Below are positions 27,398 through 33,300 of a DNA stretch of 64,000 nt, piece after piece (position 1 is the stretch's first letter; every line of letters starts with the position of its first letter). The notes under the pieces were generated by a model, which was not told the DNA's origin, did not search any database, and worked only from the letters and a program-made list of their open reading frames with translations. Source of the DNA: Magallana gigas (Eukaryota); NCBI RefSeq assembly GCF_963853765.1, contig NC_088858.1:8804001-8868000 (forward strand). Reading direction: 5' to 3'. A program made the translations under genes and the position numbers.

Positions 27398-30300
27398 ATG
27401 AGAATAATCGGATTGTTTCTGACATCTCCAAAGCACTTCATATCCTATCAGACATTTAGCACAAGACATTTCCAAACACTAGTCTCATCAACATGGTTAA
27501 GAAACCAACTGGCAGCATCGAGAGAACTCAGCTCCCAACTGAGAGTGCTGGATGCATCATGGCAGTCAAATGGTCAAGGATATGAACAGCTATACAAACA
27601 GTGAGAATATTCCTCAAGTATTTTTTTACTGGTAGCGGTAAACTATGTATACTATAGGCATAAAATTTTTATTATTCAATTGTTACATTTTGGTAGTAAC
27701 ATTATCATTGTTTGCTTTAATAATATATAGATGTATTGATCAATTTTTAAAAAGTCCTCTATCATTTTTATTTTCTTTTACGATCTTTTGATTGGGAACC
27801 CAATATTAGTTCTTTAATAATGTGTTGGCTTTTATTAAATATGAAATATGTTGGCTATTGTAGAGCACACATCCCTCATGCTTTGTATTTTGACCTGTAC
27901 AAATGCTGCACAGGCACCAAAGAAATCCCCCTCAACCTCCCAGAACCCGAGTGCTGGACGAGGTACATTAAGTCACTGGGCGTTTCCTCAGACACCCATG
28001 TGGTGGTATACGATGGTCAAAACATGAGGCTCGCTCTCAGAACCTGGTGGCTTTTCAGGGTAAGTAACTCCTATACTGCCCAACCACAGATGTAGAAGAT
28101 TTTGCCATATTTGAACCAGAAATAAAACAAGTGAAAAATTTCATTGAAAAGAGTATCCAATGGTCCTAAAACTTCAAAGTAAAGTTTATAGCCGGTAGTA
28201 GAATTTAAAGCTGCTTGGTCCGATTTTATATCAAATTTTATGCACGCTTTTAAACGATGGCTTTGCTTAGTATATATTGCTAACAAAACAAATGACATTA
28301 AAAGGTACCGCGTTATTTCACCACATATTAAATTTCATCCCTGACGACGAGACGGGTATGGTTGTATTACGAATTTGACATCGTTTTAAATAAAGGTCGA
28401 AATGATCAGACAAATTACAAATAACATATGTACGTTTTGTTAGCCAATATTTCTAAAGTCTGCTTTCTTTACAATCGATGCATAGCATGCAGGTTGAATA
28501 ACCCCAATCATTCGGGGGACGAAACCATCCTTTTCTAAACATTCCCGTGATGCATTTTGGTTTGTTTTTTCGTTTGCCCAAAGAGAAATTATTTTTATTT
28601 ACTTTGAATATTTCTAACTTTGAAAGGAGAATGATTCTGGTGGTGTAAATAGGAGAAAGTCCTTAACTTTCTAAGATAAATGATTTGTATGAAAAAAATG
28701 TTGATACTGTAATTACAAAAAAATCGGACCAAGCAGCTTTAATTTGAAGTAAATTCCATGACAAAATACATGTGCTATAATTCTTTCATTAAGTTTTTTT
28801 AAGTTTAAACCTTAATGTTACATACCGGTAAGTGTAATTTTCCTATGTATTTATTGAAGCTATTACAACACGTGTTTCGATCGAACACGTGTTTACCTGA
28901 TGTTTGTTATGAAGACTAACCAATTTGATTGGTTATTATATTTATAGAAAACCTGTTCTACAGGTATTCTCGTAAGGTACGCACGATTTGGTAAAGAATT
29001 GAGTTTTAAGTCATTCGAAGGCTCTCTCTCAGTGCAAGCAGACGTTTCTTAGCATTTACCTATGGCTAATACAGACCACGAGGAAGATATATTAATGGAA
29101 GAAGATACTGCTCATAGGCCTCCAGAACAGAATACGGCTAACGCATTCGCTTTGACCGACGCAGTTAAGCTGCTTTCTACGGCCATTTCTACACAATTTC
29201 AACAATTAACGGAGAAGTTACAAGAAGATAACAAATCTTCAGCACAGCAACTTTCTAAGAAATTCAAAGAAAATATAGCTGGAAAACTGAAGTACGAAGG
29301 GAATAAGGTACAATATTTGTTCAATGAAGAAATATTAGATGAACTTGAAAAACTCAAAGATTTGTCTACATACAATGAAAATGTTGTCAAAAGAATTAAT
29401 GATAAACTTAAAACTAGACAAAAGTATATTAGGATGGCAGACGGGTCACCTGCAGGGTGGAAAACGGTTCAGGAATACCAATGCAATGATATCGCTGACG
29501 ACTCGGACGACGAGAAAAAGATCAGGAGTGCCGAGAACAGAGCTCTCAGGAACAGTAAACAGAAAAAGTCACGCTTCCAACCGTACTTCAAACCCGTACC
29601 CTCTGCTGCTGCCGGTTCTGCTGCTCAGTTGTCTGCCCTTGCTCTACAACAGACCAACACTCTGCAGACCAATGCTGGTGCCTCGAACTCGTTCAACCAG
29701 CCCTTTCGATCAGGTAGTAGACGTACCCCACAGCCCAGCGACGTCTGCTACAGTTGCTTCCAGACTGGGCATTGGAAGACCAGATGTCCCCTCAACATCT
29801 CCACAAGTTCAAATCCCAAGTGATCTTGATGATAAGTATTTATTATCTGTAGATATGTTCGAACGAATAACAAATAATGAGATAATGAATGAGCATTGCA
29901 AGTTATTATCTATCATAGAATCAAATCAATCATGCACAGGTGTAAAAAATAGTTTACAAAATCATTATGAATTTTGGAGAAAGATAGGCGCATTTGAAGA
30001 TATCTTGAGATTGATCAAAACTGGTTATAACATTCCTTTTGCAGTTAACCCACCGAGGATTTATTTGAAAAATAATAAGTCAGCTTTACAGAATTTTTCT
30101 TTTGTTACAGAAAGCATCGGAGACTTAGTAAAATCGGGTTGCGTCATACAAGTTCCTTTCAGACCATTTGTTGTAAGTCCATTGAGCGTTGCAGAAAACA
30201 GAGAAAAGAAGCGTTTGATTTTAGATTTGAGTGTGTTAAATGGTTTTCTGAAAAAAGAAAAGATAAAGTTTGAGGATCACAAACTGGCTTTACAATATTT

Positions 30301-33300
30301 TGAGAACAATTGTTTCTGTATCAAATTTGATCTTAAATCTGGTTACCACCATATAGATATTTGTAAGGAATGTCAAACATTCCTTGGTTTTGAGTGGAAA
30401 GGGGAATACTATTGCTTTACAGTACTTCCATTTGGTTTGTCTACAGCCCCGTATATATTTACTAAGTGTCTAAGAGCTATGGTTAAGTATTGGAGATCTA
30501 ACAATATAAAAATTGTTCTGTATTTAGATGACGGGCTAGCTATGGCAGAATCATTTGAGGAATGTCAGAGAATTTCCAGTTTTATCAAATCATCACTAGA
30601 GGATGCTGGATTATTAATTAATCAAGAAAAATCTATTTTCAGTCCAGTTCAAGATATTGAATGGTTAGGGATCAGATGGAATTCAGTAAGATTTAGCATT
30701 TCCATTCCAGAAAGAAGAATTCAAGATGTTGAGTCTACTATAGTTCAGTTTCTTTCAGATTTACCAAAAGTTTCAGCTAGGGCGCTGGCCAGAGTTGCTG
30801 GGAAAATAATTTCATTGCAACCTGTCTTTGGTAATATTTGTAGACTAATGACAAGATACTGCTATATGGAAATAGTTTTCAGAGTGTCATGGGATAATAC
30901 ACTGAATTTCAAGTTTGCTACAAAATCAATAAACGAATTAAAGTTCTGGTTAATACATTTTCAAAAATACAATAACAAAAAACTAACAGTAACGGAAAGA
31001 GAAAGTACGATCGTTTATTCATATGCTAGCGCTGTAGGCGCTGGGGCATTTACTGTGGGTGTGGATGAAAAGTGTTTTCATCAAATGTGGAATGAAAATG
31101 AAATGAGCAAAAGTTCGACATGGCGAGAAATGAAAGCCATAGAATTGGCCTTGATATCATTTAACGAACTGTTATTTAACAAATGCGTCAAATGGTTTAC
31201 AGATAACCAGAGCTGTGTGAATATTTTGCAGTTGGGCAGCATGAAAGCAGATTTACAAGAAATAGCATTTAATATATTCTTGTTTTGCAGGGAGCACAAC
31301 ATTTCAGTCGACATTCAGTGGATCCCCAGAGACAAAAATCAGAAAGCTGATTATTTAAGCAAACTTGTTGATTATGAAGACTGGGGAGTGTCTCAAGATT
31401 TTTTCAGTTTCATTGATTCTTTATATGGTCCACATTCCGTTGACAGATTTGCTAATTCAAAAAACAAAAAATTGCCTAGATTTAATTCGTTGTTTTGGAA
31501 TCCGGCTACGGAAGCTGTAAATTCATTTACTCAAGACTGGAGAACAGAAAACAATTGGTTAGTTCCGCCCATTTATTTAGTGACAAAAACCATTAAATAT
31601 CTCATTAATAGCAAAGCGGTGGGAACCTTGATTGTACCAAAATGGAGATCTGCTTCTTTTTGGCCTTACATTTATAAAGATAAATATTCTACTTATGAAT
31701 ATATCACAGATATCTTAGAGTTCAGTGACGCATCAGGAATTTACGTGCAAGGTCAGAACAAATCCACGGTTTTTGGTTCTAACCGATTTGTATCTCCAGT
31801 ATTGGCTTTAAGACTTGATGCAAGGTTTTTGTGATATAATGATACATATATCATAGGACGTGTATATATACAGCAGGACCTGGTACTTTAAGAATGGTAC
31901 TGCAGACGTTGATGTAAATATATAGTTTGAGGCCCTGGTACATATTTGTACTGCAGATGTTTGATATATTCTAATTTAAGGCCCTGGTACATATTTGTAT
32001 TGCAGATGTTTGATATATTCTAATTTAAGGTCCTGGTACATAATTGTACTGCAGATGTTTGTTTTATTTTATTTAAGATTCAGGTACATAATTGTATTGC
32101 AGTTGTTTAGTTAATGTGCATTAATTAGAATTACCTTGATATTCAAGATATTTTGATTGAACAGTTTCTTTTAACTGGTTATTTGTCTTGTACATTTTGC
32201 AGAATTATTTTCGGTCGGTAGGTGGACGTCTTTATTTGACAGCGCTCAGGATTCATCTCTTTTGAAGCTTGCGGAGTCCTTACCGAATTACTGCCTAAAA
32301 TCAAAAGCCGAAAATACAGTAAAGAAATATAGGTACGCATTCAAAAACTTTTCCAAGTGGTGTAAAACATTTAAACCAACCATCGATCATTTACCAGCCT
32401 CCGATGTACATGTCGCATTATATTTAGCTCATCTCGCAAACACTTTTGATTCCTCTTCGAAGATAGAAGAAGCTACTCATGCAATCACATGGGCTCATGA
32501 CATGGCTGGATTCCCTAATCCTTGTGATTCCACCTTTGTTAAGTTTGTGAAAGAAGGTTGTATCAGAGAACATAGTCACCCTGTCGTTAAAAAAGAACCG
32601 ATTTCATCAGATATATTGTCTGCTGTTGTTGAAAAGTTTGGGAAGAGTGATGCAACACTATATGACCTTCGAACCTGTTGTATTTTTCTTTTAGGATATG
32701 CAGGTTTTTTGCGTTTTTCAGAAATTGTAAACATAAGAAGGTCACAATTAGTTTTTAGTGACTCTCATCTAACATTGTTTATTACAAAAAGCAAAACAGA
32801 CGTTTACAAACAAGGTTCTTCTCTATGTTTATCTAAAACGAATTCTTCTACTTGTCCTGTATCTATGCTTCTCCGATATTTACTTTTATCAGACATTGAT
32901 GAAAGGTCGGAAGACTTTATTTTTAGGCAAGTTACATTTTGCAAGAAAAATAACTCGTACAAGCTTAGAAATAATAAACAACCTTTGTCATATACAAGAG
33001 TACGAGAATTAGTGTTGTCTACATTGGACAGTCTAGGCTTAGATTCAAAGAAATATGGTGTTCATAGTTTGAGGTCGGGTGGGGCAACTGCTGCAGCCGC
33101 AGCAGGTGTCAGCGATCGTCTTTTTAAAAAACACGGGCGTTGGAAATCTGAAAATGCCAAAGATGGTTATGTGCACGAAAACTTACAAGTTAAACTGTCT
33201 GTTACCAAACAACTTGGGTTATAATTCAAATGTCTTTTCTTTCTTTATCGTCGAACTGCACTTCTGAGAGCGCTTCTGCATCTATATAAGTGTTGTTATT

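Follow-up and report, generated by a model that had tools for sequence, protein, structure and literature searches.

The tyrosine recombinase (YR) of a PAT-like, DIRS-order retrotransposon of Magallana gigas (Pacific oyster) is probably reached through a conserved optional AT-AC intron, 29832-32193, that starts just past the gag stop codon (positions are those of the window, the whole stretch of 64,000 nucleotides that was analysed; a slash in a motif marks a splice site). According to this model, the unspliced RNA would be both the genome and the mRNA for Gag, Pol would be read from it in the gag +1 frame, and YR would be reached by removal of one intron running from 29831/29832 (..GAT G/ATAAGTAT..) to 32193/32194 (..CTTGTAC/AT TTT GCA GAA..). 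The intron would end 11 nt before the conserved YR residues, with phase 1 on both sides, and all of the RT, RNase H and Dam-like domains would be deleted, so that the spliced RNA would read gag, the same +1 entry, ..SDLD-D-FAELFSVGRW.. and then the recombinase. Pol and YR would be mutually exclusive continuations of one upstream reading frame, and because the enzyme region is exchanged for YR, that frame (gag plus the +1 entry) would feed two alternative enzymes. The AT-AC pair, likely to be poorly recognised, would keep the spliced form rare, and the CAG/ 9 nt further on would be a second conserved 3′ site, used by relatives with ordinary G/GT donors. An alternative-splicing switch in this gene was proposed in an earlier note on the same DNA; its core, an optional intron that swaps Pol for YR behind gag, is retained here, and its gag donor at 29713 and its spliced Gag-Pol are abandoned.

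Identity and reading frames of the element

The element contains gag, pol (RT/RNase H/Dam-like), the recombinase and split direct repeats (Table 1). The repeat order, A1 ... B1 A2 ... B2, is of the split direct type, not that of inverted terminal repeats with an internal complementary region, and the two B repeats are 100% identical. Solo A-B copies are present elsewhere in the genome, and the spacer between pol and YR in several other families contains hairpin-like motifs similar to the tandem 49-nt units. In Pfam profile searches, pol matched an RT domain (PF00078, E=7e-22) and RNase H (RVT_3, E=7.5e-4) and no integrase or protease domain, and YR matched PF00589 (E=3e-9; Phage_integrase catalytic domain at ~32661-33182) as well as a SAM-like N-terminal domain. 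The Dam-like domain after RNase H is a candidate (PF05869, 19.6 bits, E=7.6e-4, below the 28.1-bit cut-off); the same domain is precomputed on several of the pol homologues, of which 1372 were found, many with an RT annotation. Homologues of gag are present in at least 15 related elements.

This composition, with gag, RT/RNase H followed by a candidate methyltransferase-like (Dam-like) domain, a tyrosine recombinase, A1..B1A2..B2 repeats and neither integrase nor protease, is that of the PAT-like and DIRS-order YR retrotransposons (Poulter and Goodwin; overview in PMC3266345). The accessible papers on such elements describe ORF overlaps, whereas the oyster element has a recombinase without a start codon behind putative conserved splice sites. 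As the earlier note stated, the recombinase lacks its own start codon: its frame contains no ATG before about residue 100 (~32505), and a stop ~10 codons upstream of the acceptor closes it.

Table 1. Features of the element and its proposed splice sites, in window coordinates.
Feature	Position	Strand	Basis
Split direct repeat A1, element 5′ end, presumed 5′ UTR	28845-29048	+	Repeat pair with 33352-33555, 100% identity
gag ORF, 253 aa, CCHC zinc knuckle, UGA stop 29821-29823	29062-29823	+	ORF; weak Pfam zf-CCHC match
pol-frame ORF (gag +1 frame), 831 codons from first ATG; conserved Pol from ~29828	29339-31834	+	ORF and Pfam
Donor-like site of the earlier note, CAG/GTAGTA, exon end 29713, gag phase 1	29711-29719	+	W family only
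Conserved motif GAT G/ATAAGTAT, pol-frame codons D-D-K-Y, proposed AT-type 5′ splice site	29828-29839	+	Conservation and RefSeq model
Pol acceptor-like site of the earlier note, TTATTATCTGTAG/, exon start 29853, just before ATG 29855	29840-29852	+	Not conserved in L031 or other families
Proposed optional AT-AC intron, 2362 nt, holding all of RT, RNase H, Dam-like domain and tandem hairpin repeats	29832-32193	+	Junction in relatives; joined frame open
RT; RNase H; Dam-like domain (within pol)	~30290-30676; ~31112-31363; ~31379-31597	+	Pfam
Tandem array of four 49-nt units, each containing a small hairpin (CCTGGTAC..GTACTGCAGATG), inside the proposed intron	31923-32117	+	Repeat search
Proposed twin 3′ splice sites, CTTGTAC/ (intron end 32193) and TTTTGCAG/ 9 nt downstream (intron end 32202)	32187-32202	+	Conservation
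Recombinase (YR) coding exon, stop 33222-33224	32194-33224	+	Homologues align from first residue after acceptor
Split direct repeats B1 33254-33352, A2 33352-33555, B2 33706-33804, closing the element	33254-33804	+	Repeat search

Putative splice sites behind gag and in front of the recombinase

The proposed sites were compared in 19 elements of 16 families (M. gigas, Saccostrea, Pinctada, Mytilus edulis, Pecten and three ENA contigs). Both members of the 3′ pair are in phase 1 of the YR frame. In the alignment of related elements the AC is at the same position in 14 of 19, and an AG/ with a pyrimidine tract, the acceptor of the earlier note, keeps its codon position in 18 of 19 (17 CAG/, one GAG/). 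Annotated gene models of relatives use both AC/ and CAG/ as acceptors, the latter in five bivalve species (RefSeq/GenBank). In all families the YR frame is the same as the pol frame across the junction, whereas the genomic pol-to-YR frame offset differs between them. To judge from this conservation, the region in front of YR is a conserved 3′ splice site.

The candidate donor (phase 1 in the pol frame) lies 8 nt past the gag stop and after the zinc knuckle, and its motif is present in 15 of the 19 elements. A phase-1 pol-frame G/AT(A/G)AGTAT is paired with a phase-1 YR-frame AC/ in 13 elements (10 families), all open once joined, with the donor 3-20 nt past the gag stop and AC/ 9 nt before CAG/. 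Three families without AC or usable AT pairing have instead a GT-AG pair that is shifted without a change of frame, namely a GT 4 nt downstream (GTATGT in L048 and L049; GTATTT in L054, which retains the AT motif) and an AG/ 1 nt downstream, phase-2/phase-2 and open when joined. No matched pair is found in three elements, from Pecten (TT..AC), ENA-c (AT..AA) and Saccostrea (own ATG); the Pecten gene model uses a non-canonical TT-AG join.

Within these motifs, the K/E/Q codon of the donor ends in G in 16/16 families, although just 31% of the Lys codons here are AAG, Asp is encoded by GAT in 13/13, and the Ser/Ala/Thr codon that forms CAG is xCA in 15/15, against codon usage; the codon before AC is otherwise unconserved. 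Selection on the putative splice-site motifs thus appears to act on nucleotides and not on protein alone, and part of the conservation could reflect Pol coding (D-K-Y) or another signal. It is quite unlikely that the motifs merely encode this part of Pol and the first YR residues (x-F-S/A-D), with no functional splicing and with YR made from unspliced RNA by non-AUG initiation, reinitiation or an internal Met. The fixed synonymous sites, the AC across an unconserved codon and the in-frame switch to GT-AG would be unexpected from coding alone, many independent gene models splice at the YR acceptor, and most families have no ATG and a stop 5-25 codons upstream. In keeping with such expression, one Saccostrea element supplies an ATG of its own, four codons ahead of the conserved start of YR, the L033 and L034 families have an in-frame ATG 9 codons upstream, and RefSeq models of copies of the W family, to which the oyster copy belongs, start at an internal Met (240 aa); but a start there would drop the SAM-like N-terminal domain. 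The RNA seen is also unspliced only: one RNA-library contig is unspliced from 28845 to 31981, and a second through both acceptors. No splice junction of the oyster copy occurs in ~130 RNA reads, a depth far too low to decide (three raw RNA-seq runs, each of 24-55 reads and none covering 29712-29863). Searches of the genome with five junction patterns returned no intron-less copies, and none were found in JGI contigs.

The favoured AT-AC join, 29831/32194, is open (..IPSDLD-D-FAELFSVGRW..; predicted peptide across the spliced junction, ..IPSDLDDFAELFSVGR..). Its 5′ site, G/ATAAGTAT, matches the U1 consensus G/GTAAGTAT at all positions from -1 to +8 except +1, and neither a U12-type 5′ site (ATATCC) nor a U12-type branch box (TCCTTAAC) was found in the proposed intron, which is therefore best read as an AT-AC intron with U2-type, not U12-type, signals. 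AT-AC termini occur in U2-type introns too (Wu and Krainer 1997, as cited in PMC3584512), where they are poorly recognised (PMC3584512, PMC7367187). The oyster candidate resembles these introns in its AT and AC termini, in the U1 complementarity of the rest of its 5′ site and in lacking the U12 elements; it differs from them in its location, because the known ones are rare introns of cellular genes and the candidate is inside a retrotransposon. A literature search found no description of an AT-AC intron inside a retrotransposon.

In the family nearest to that of the oyster copy, the RefSeq protein XP_065922975.1 (P0135) maps at 100% to L031 with the exact AT-AC junction (intron ATAAGTAT...TTTTATAC). 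The junction is known in that family only as this RefSeq model, beyond which the protein collection holds no spliced ORF of the family. Two Mytilus californianus models (P0053 and P0065) share the junction peptide ..N-G-FSD-IF... RefSeq names the YR genes 'integrase/recombinase xerD homolog', with assorted N-termini.

Other gene models join ordinary donors to CAG/, such as TCAG/GTACAC in RNase H (P0041/P0039), ATGG/GTAACA (P0008/P0097) and those of Pinctada (P0011) and M. coruscus (P0283), and in all of these the donor is a phase-1 pol-frame GT. YR might accordingly be reached mainly through CAG/ at 32203 from ordinary G/GT donors within pol, giving RT-YR or Pol-YR fusions, as the fixation of CAG against codon usage would also allow. 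The oyster copy has two phase-1 pol-frame candidates, at 31058 (TGG/GTGTGG, at the start of RNase H and homologous to the P0041 donor) and at 31751 (AAG/GTCAGA, near the end of pol), but both are weak (2.1 and 2.9 bits), and such donors differ between families. Since the gene models concerned may represent cryptic splicing or prediction artefacts, and since the conserved AT..AC pair and its GT-AG covariants would be left unexplained, this route is unlikely to be the main one.

Entry into Pol and the sites in gag

The pol frame is open far upstream of the gag stop and overlaps gag by ~160 codons, which was absent from the earlier note. This +1 frame is open for 161 codons back from the stop, compared with 36 on average in synonymous shuffles (P=0.0005), and its length is largely accounted for by the amino-acid composition of gag (shuffle means 36-103 codons). 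The Pol-frame residues D-D/K-K/E-Y straddle the gag stop and are conserved in every family compared. Because the conserved Pol N-terminus (D-D-K-Y) has this position, entry into Pol should take place at or before the gag stop, most likely by a +1 recoding event at the stop itself.

Programmed +1 frameshifting is exemplified by Ty1/Ty3, antizyme and the AAA-stop sites of Euplotes. The oyster element is similar to these systems in the frame of Pol, which is gag +1 and stays open through the stop, and in the codon before the stop, which is AAA or AAG in roughly half the families and CAA or CAG in most of the rest. It is dissimilar in that no recognised slippery heptamer or stimulator is present at the gag stop, and in that one family apparently has pol in the -1 frame.

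Splicing in place of frameshifting was the proposal of the earlier note, in which a single gag donor at 29713 has two alternative partners, 29853 for Gag-Pol and 32203 for Gag-YR. The three sites are present as described (CAG/GTAGTA, TCTGTAG/AT ATG and TTTTGCAG/AA TTA), and both joins are in frame and open (..QPFRS-D-MFERIT.. and ..QPFRS-E-LFSVGRW.., with introns of 139 and 2489 nt); moreover, the 32203 acceptor is the one conserved and used in relatives. However, the prior chance of being in frame was one in three for each join, and the case for the three sites beyond chance is thin. The donor consists only of a GGT glycine codon and scores ~1 bit on a rough donor matrix with a maximum of ~8.7 bits, and this is the best of the 10 phase-1 GT dinucleotides in the gag ORF. 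W-family copies retain the GGT down to 78% identity, but the nearest family has GCT here and another family has CAG TCA. Likewise, the pol acceptor is missing from the nearest family (TTTG/AC), and the conserved Pol codons D-D-K-Y-L-L-S lie upstream of it. Since Pol-frame residues are conserved upstream of 29852, Pol coding begins before that site, and Gag-Pol would require a shift to the frame one base ahead of gag and not this splice. A join from a gag-frame phase-1 GT donor to a 32203-type acceptor is annotated in Mytilus edulis (P0054, GAG/GTGAGT), though at gag codon 17. Neither junction reads, at negligible depth, nor intron-less copies were found. Splicing from 29713 is very unlikely, and its exact junctions are not for carrying into annotation. 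The better-supported donor appears to be the AT at 29831/29832, pairing with AC/ at 32193.

Relation to known spliced elements

In avian sarcoma/leukosis virus, the donor of the subgenomic env mRNA lies a few codons into gag, and env borrows the gag AUG. The proposed oyster intron is comparable in that optional, inefficient splicing would remove gag-pol sequence and bring a start-less downstream ORF into frame, and the Mytilus edulis model, which joins early gag to YR, is a direct analogue. In contrast, the oyster donor would be an AT-AC donor lying in the pol frame beyond the gag stop, and the spliced RNA, retaining all of gag, would still need the change of frame from gag to pol. In a donor scan just one GT donor of the oyster element is moderately good, AAG/GTACGC in A1 (exon end 28976); it provides YR with no in-frame AUG, since TAA stands just before the junction. 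The scan found no GT in the first 30 gag codons, and a leader or early-gag donor suited to YR is seen only in the M. edulis element.

The spliced LTR retrotransposons copia, BARE and Ogre use GT-AG introns that alter the Gag:Pol ratio or join parts of Pol. Splicing would set the ratio of structural to enzymatic products in the oyster element as well, but Pol would be exchanged for the recombinase. Term searches of PMC3266345 and PMC6681497 returned no mention of native introns or splicing in YR retrotransposons, and in the DIRS-1 paper splicing concerns reporter cassettes only. The accessible literature has no description of how DIRS-order elements express the recombinase or of its ratio to Gag and Pol.

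There is perhaps an even chance that bivalve PAT-like elements in general carry a conserved, deliberately inefficient U2-type AT-AC intron, replaced by a GT-AG pair in some lineages, that exchanges the RT/RNase H/methyltransferase-like region for YR. Such an intron would explain the missing start codon in most bivalve members and would supply a testable annotation rule for these elements. If true, the model would provide a mechanism for YR expression in the DIRS order and the first natural AT-AC intron found to switch expression in a mobile element. Should the AT-AC pair prove to be in use, a very rare class of U2-type intron would have been kept by selection across bivalve orders, together with GT-AG covariants, and would lend itself to work on how isoform ratios are set by weak splice sites.

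The recombinase acceptor and the joins proposed for it

The sites considered here are enclosed by W, a tyrosine-recombinase retrotransposon of PAT-like architecture and DIRS order (PMC3266345), of which four copies at 95% identity or more are found in the genome together with decayed copies, solo A-B repeats and many related families. Solo copies of ~455 bp that match the A2-to-B2 end at 85-99% are numerous on other chromosomes (L013-L017, L020, L023, L024 and L026) and, by analogy with solo LTRs, may be recombination remnants. The tandem hairpin units of the pol-YR spacer number three or four in W and four in the nearest family (locus L031), and occur also in the pol-YR spacers of L033/L034/L050 and L045; there are none in the 3 kb upstream. 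The array is a candidate recombinase site, packaging signal or splicing control, any of which it might be.

Features of retrotransposon W (window positions)
Feature	Position	Description
Retrotransposon W	28845-33804	4,960 bp; encloses the sites under study
Split direct repeats A1 / A2	28845-29048 / 33352-33555	pair identity 100%
Split direct repeats B1 / B2	33254-33352 / 33706-33804	pair identity 100%
gag	29062-29823	CCHC knuckle
pol-frame ORF	open 29339-31834	RVT_1, RNase H-like domain, weak Dam-like match
AT-AC intron, proposed	29832-32193	2,362 nt
AT-AC junction, proposed	29831/32194	exon ..GTGATCTTGATG joined to ATTTTGCAGAATTA..
Predicted junction peptide, AT-AC splice		IPSDLDDFAELFSVGR
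Tandem units with conserved small hairpin motif	31923-32117	CCTGGTAC ..loop.. GTACTGCAGATG; pol-YR spacer, inside the proposed intron
Tyrosine recombinase (YR) frame	open ~32178-33224	first ATG not before ~residue 100

An earlier note proposed that a single gag donor at 29713 is spliced either to a pol exon starting at 29853 or to a recombinase exon starting at 32203. A check of the sequence finds all three sites at these positions and both joins in frame, which alone is not strong evidence. Gag contains ten phase-1 GT dinucleotides, the best of which is the proposed donor, yet it scores only ~1 bit with a rough donor matrix; the only GT donor above 4.5 bits in the whole element lies in the leader.

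Comparison of W with 18 other elements (M. gigas families at 45-66% protein identity, Saccostrea, Pinctada, Mytilus edulis, Pecten and three ENA contigs) bears out the recombinase acceptor, AG^ (^ marks the splice boundary) being found at exactly the same codon position in 18 of the 19 elements. In all relatives the YR alignment begins at the first residue after this site, and stops lie 5-25 codons upstream. This conservation argues that the acceptor region is a real 3' splice site. Annotated models join the same CAG^ to ordinary phase-1 G^GT donors, located at the start of RNase H in M. gigas (P0041/P0039) and in the RT thumb in C. gigas P0008 and Saccostrea P0097; Pinctada P0011 and M. coruscus P0283 are further such models. 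In the M. edulis model P0054 the donor is GAG^GTGAGT at gag codon 17, and the recombinase thus has the AUG of gag. The RefSeq recombinases of two W-family copies (P0121 and P0122; XP_065932144.1 and XP_065939188.1) are 240 aa long from an internal Met and do not contain the SAM-like N-terminal domain; they are probably truncated models.

The other two sites, by contrast, are not conserved. The donor at 29713 is a GGT glycine codon retained in the W family alone; its counterpart is GCT in the nearest family and, in another, CAG TCA. The pol acceptor is missing from the nearest family (TTTG^AC). Residues D-D/K-K/E-Y of the Pol frame are conserved upstream of this acceptor and span the end of gag in each family, on both sides of its stop, and Pol coding therefore starts before the acceptor. 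Since pol occupies the +1 frame relative to gag in every family except one, Gag-Pol needs a change of frame and not the proposed splice. The evidence supports optional splicing that swaps the recombinase for Pol, with its acceptor region, but lends no support to the gag donor, the pol acceptor or a spliced Gag-Pol; the join of 29713 to 32203 may be a minor route.

Other routes were also rejected. Checked by hand, a splice to the recombinase from AAG^GT near the pol stop (31824) is in phase 2 and matches the frame of neither acceptor. The donor in the leader (28976) was discarded as a partner of the pol ATG, the pol acceptor not being conserved, and as a partner of the recombinase because an in-frame TAA lies directly upstream.

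A proposed AT-AC intron ending before the recombinase

The reading favoured instead is an AT-AC intron that starts just after the gag stop. The RefSeq protein XP_065922975.1 (P0135), from the nearest family, reads the pol-frame overlap to ..QNEVD and continues G-F-A-D-IFSVGRW; it maps at 100% to L031, where its intron starts ATAAGTAT and ends TTTTATAC. Of the 19 elements, 13 that represent ten families combine G^AT(A/G)AGTAT in pol-frame phase 1, at 3-20 nt after the gag stop, with AC^ in YR-frame phase 1 at 9 nt before CAG^, and the joined frame is open in all 13. In three families without the AC (L048, L049 and L054), a GT 4 nt downstream is paired with an AG^ 1 nt downstream; the two sites are in phase 2, and the frame is open. 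The shifted donor is GTATGT in L048 and L049, and GTATTT in L054, where the AT motif persists. A matched pair is absent from Pecten (TT..AC), ENA-c (AT..AA) and Saccostrea (own ATG). The data show directly that the signals are conserved, that they covary with the frame preserved, and that annotated models of relatives use the junction.

The K/E/Q codon of the donor motif ends in G in 16/16 families (AAG makes up 31% of Lys codons here), its Asp codon is GAT in 13/13, and the codon forming CAG is xCA in 15/15, counts from which codon-fixation probabilities are overstated because the families were treated as independent. Synonymous sites elsewhere are saturated at the divergence of the compared families. 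The codon pattern indicates that selection at the intron signals acts on nucleotides and not on the protein alone.

In W the joined pol frame reads ..IPSDLD-D-FAELFSVGRW.., and the gag frame meets stops; the joined translations give the natural letters of single copies. A U12-type intron was rejected, as the U12 5' site and branch-box motifs were not found. U2-type introns with AT-AC termini are known and are poorly recognised (PMC3584512, PMC7367187). The literature searched yielded no account of YR retrotransposons with native splicing or AT-AC introns.

In Mytilus edulis (L051, 8001-8051 and 11438), gag codon 16 is followed by GAG^GTGAGT, a strong canonical donor that the RefSeq model joins to the YR CAG^, and the element also retains the AT..AC pair. 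The element of Saccostrea cucullata (L053, 7890-7930) is without the twin acceptor, and an ATG lies four codons ahead of its conserved YR start; it may represent a lineage in which splicing is no longer required. In a decayed copy 80-88% identical to W (L006/L021/L036, G000 C4), the YR acceptor CAG reads CAT and the upstream AC^ is kept in frame, an observation of little weight from a single decayed locus.

RNA and spliced copies

Reads of three raw RNA-seq runs, and the contigs of one RNA set, were mapped to 28800-33351. The runs gave 55, 24 and 49 raw reads, none over 29712-29863 and none with a joint matching any candidate junction. One RNA-library contig is unspliced over 28845-31981, and a second contig and two or more raw reads cross 32175-32253 unspliced. 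Unspliced W RNA exists; at 24-55 reads per run, a rare spliced form is neither shown nor excluded. The nearest family is far better expressed (176 Logan contigs).

Over ~29560-29711, run X19 has a depth of ~3 reads in the bin ending at 29711 and zero in the next, at the gag donor of the earlier note; no loose ends or joints are listed there, and the reads are too few to interpret. At 33299-33351, runs X21 and X24 each have 20 to 25 reads whose match starts only at 33299 and which carry common foreign sequence before it; another, better-expressed transcript or element has the end of repeat B1 in common.

Retro-copied spliced forms with at most 3 mismatches were not found in the genome for the W AT-AC junction, for the two junctions of the earlier note or for the AT-AC junctions of two other families. 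Two junction patterns had no match among JGI metagenome contigs. A search for spliced ORFs of the nearest family in a collection of 5.8 billion proteins retrieved the unspliced cluster, a single unrelated model and nothing else. In P0212, from a Logan contig that shares 99% identity with the W family, the ORF passes from the gag N-terminus directly into the pol frame at ..MADGSP/WLQGGKRF..; the join, seen in this single contig, fits a 4-nt insertion by which gag residues 1-130 were fused to the +1 frame, and the contig is probably a mutant copy rather than a product of RNA processing.

Entry into the +1 frame and the proposed mechanism

In eleven families the +1 frame is open for 113-161 codons back from the gag stop. 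Means of 36-103 open codons arise from synonymous shuffles alone, with per-family P from 0.0005 to 0.41 (~1e-6 in a hand-computed Fisher combination), and the excess openness per family is only modest; the open frame is therefore not built on. The possibility that the long +1 ORF opens with an acceptor or start was rejected: the ORF begins at variable gag codons (39-144), and a conserved gag motif accounts for the stop-plus-ATG pattern there. The sequence has no known slippery site. At L047 (G000 C4:19465500-19473500), the conserved D-K-Y with which Pol starts falls in the gag -1 frame, and it is the gag +1 frame that is open for 120 codons, probably owing to a small indel near the gag end of that copy.

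In the mechanism proposed here, W RNA would be spliced at 29831/32194 at a low level, and the +1 frame would be entered by recoding at the gag stop. The spliced RNA would encode gag and then, in the +1 frame, the recombinase in place of Pol.
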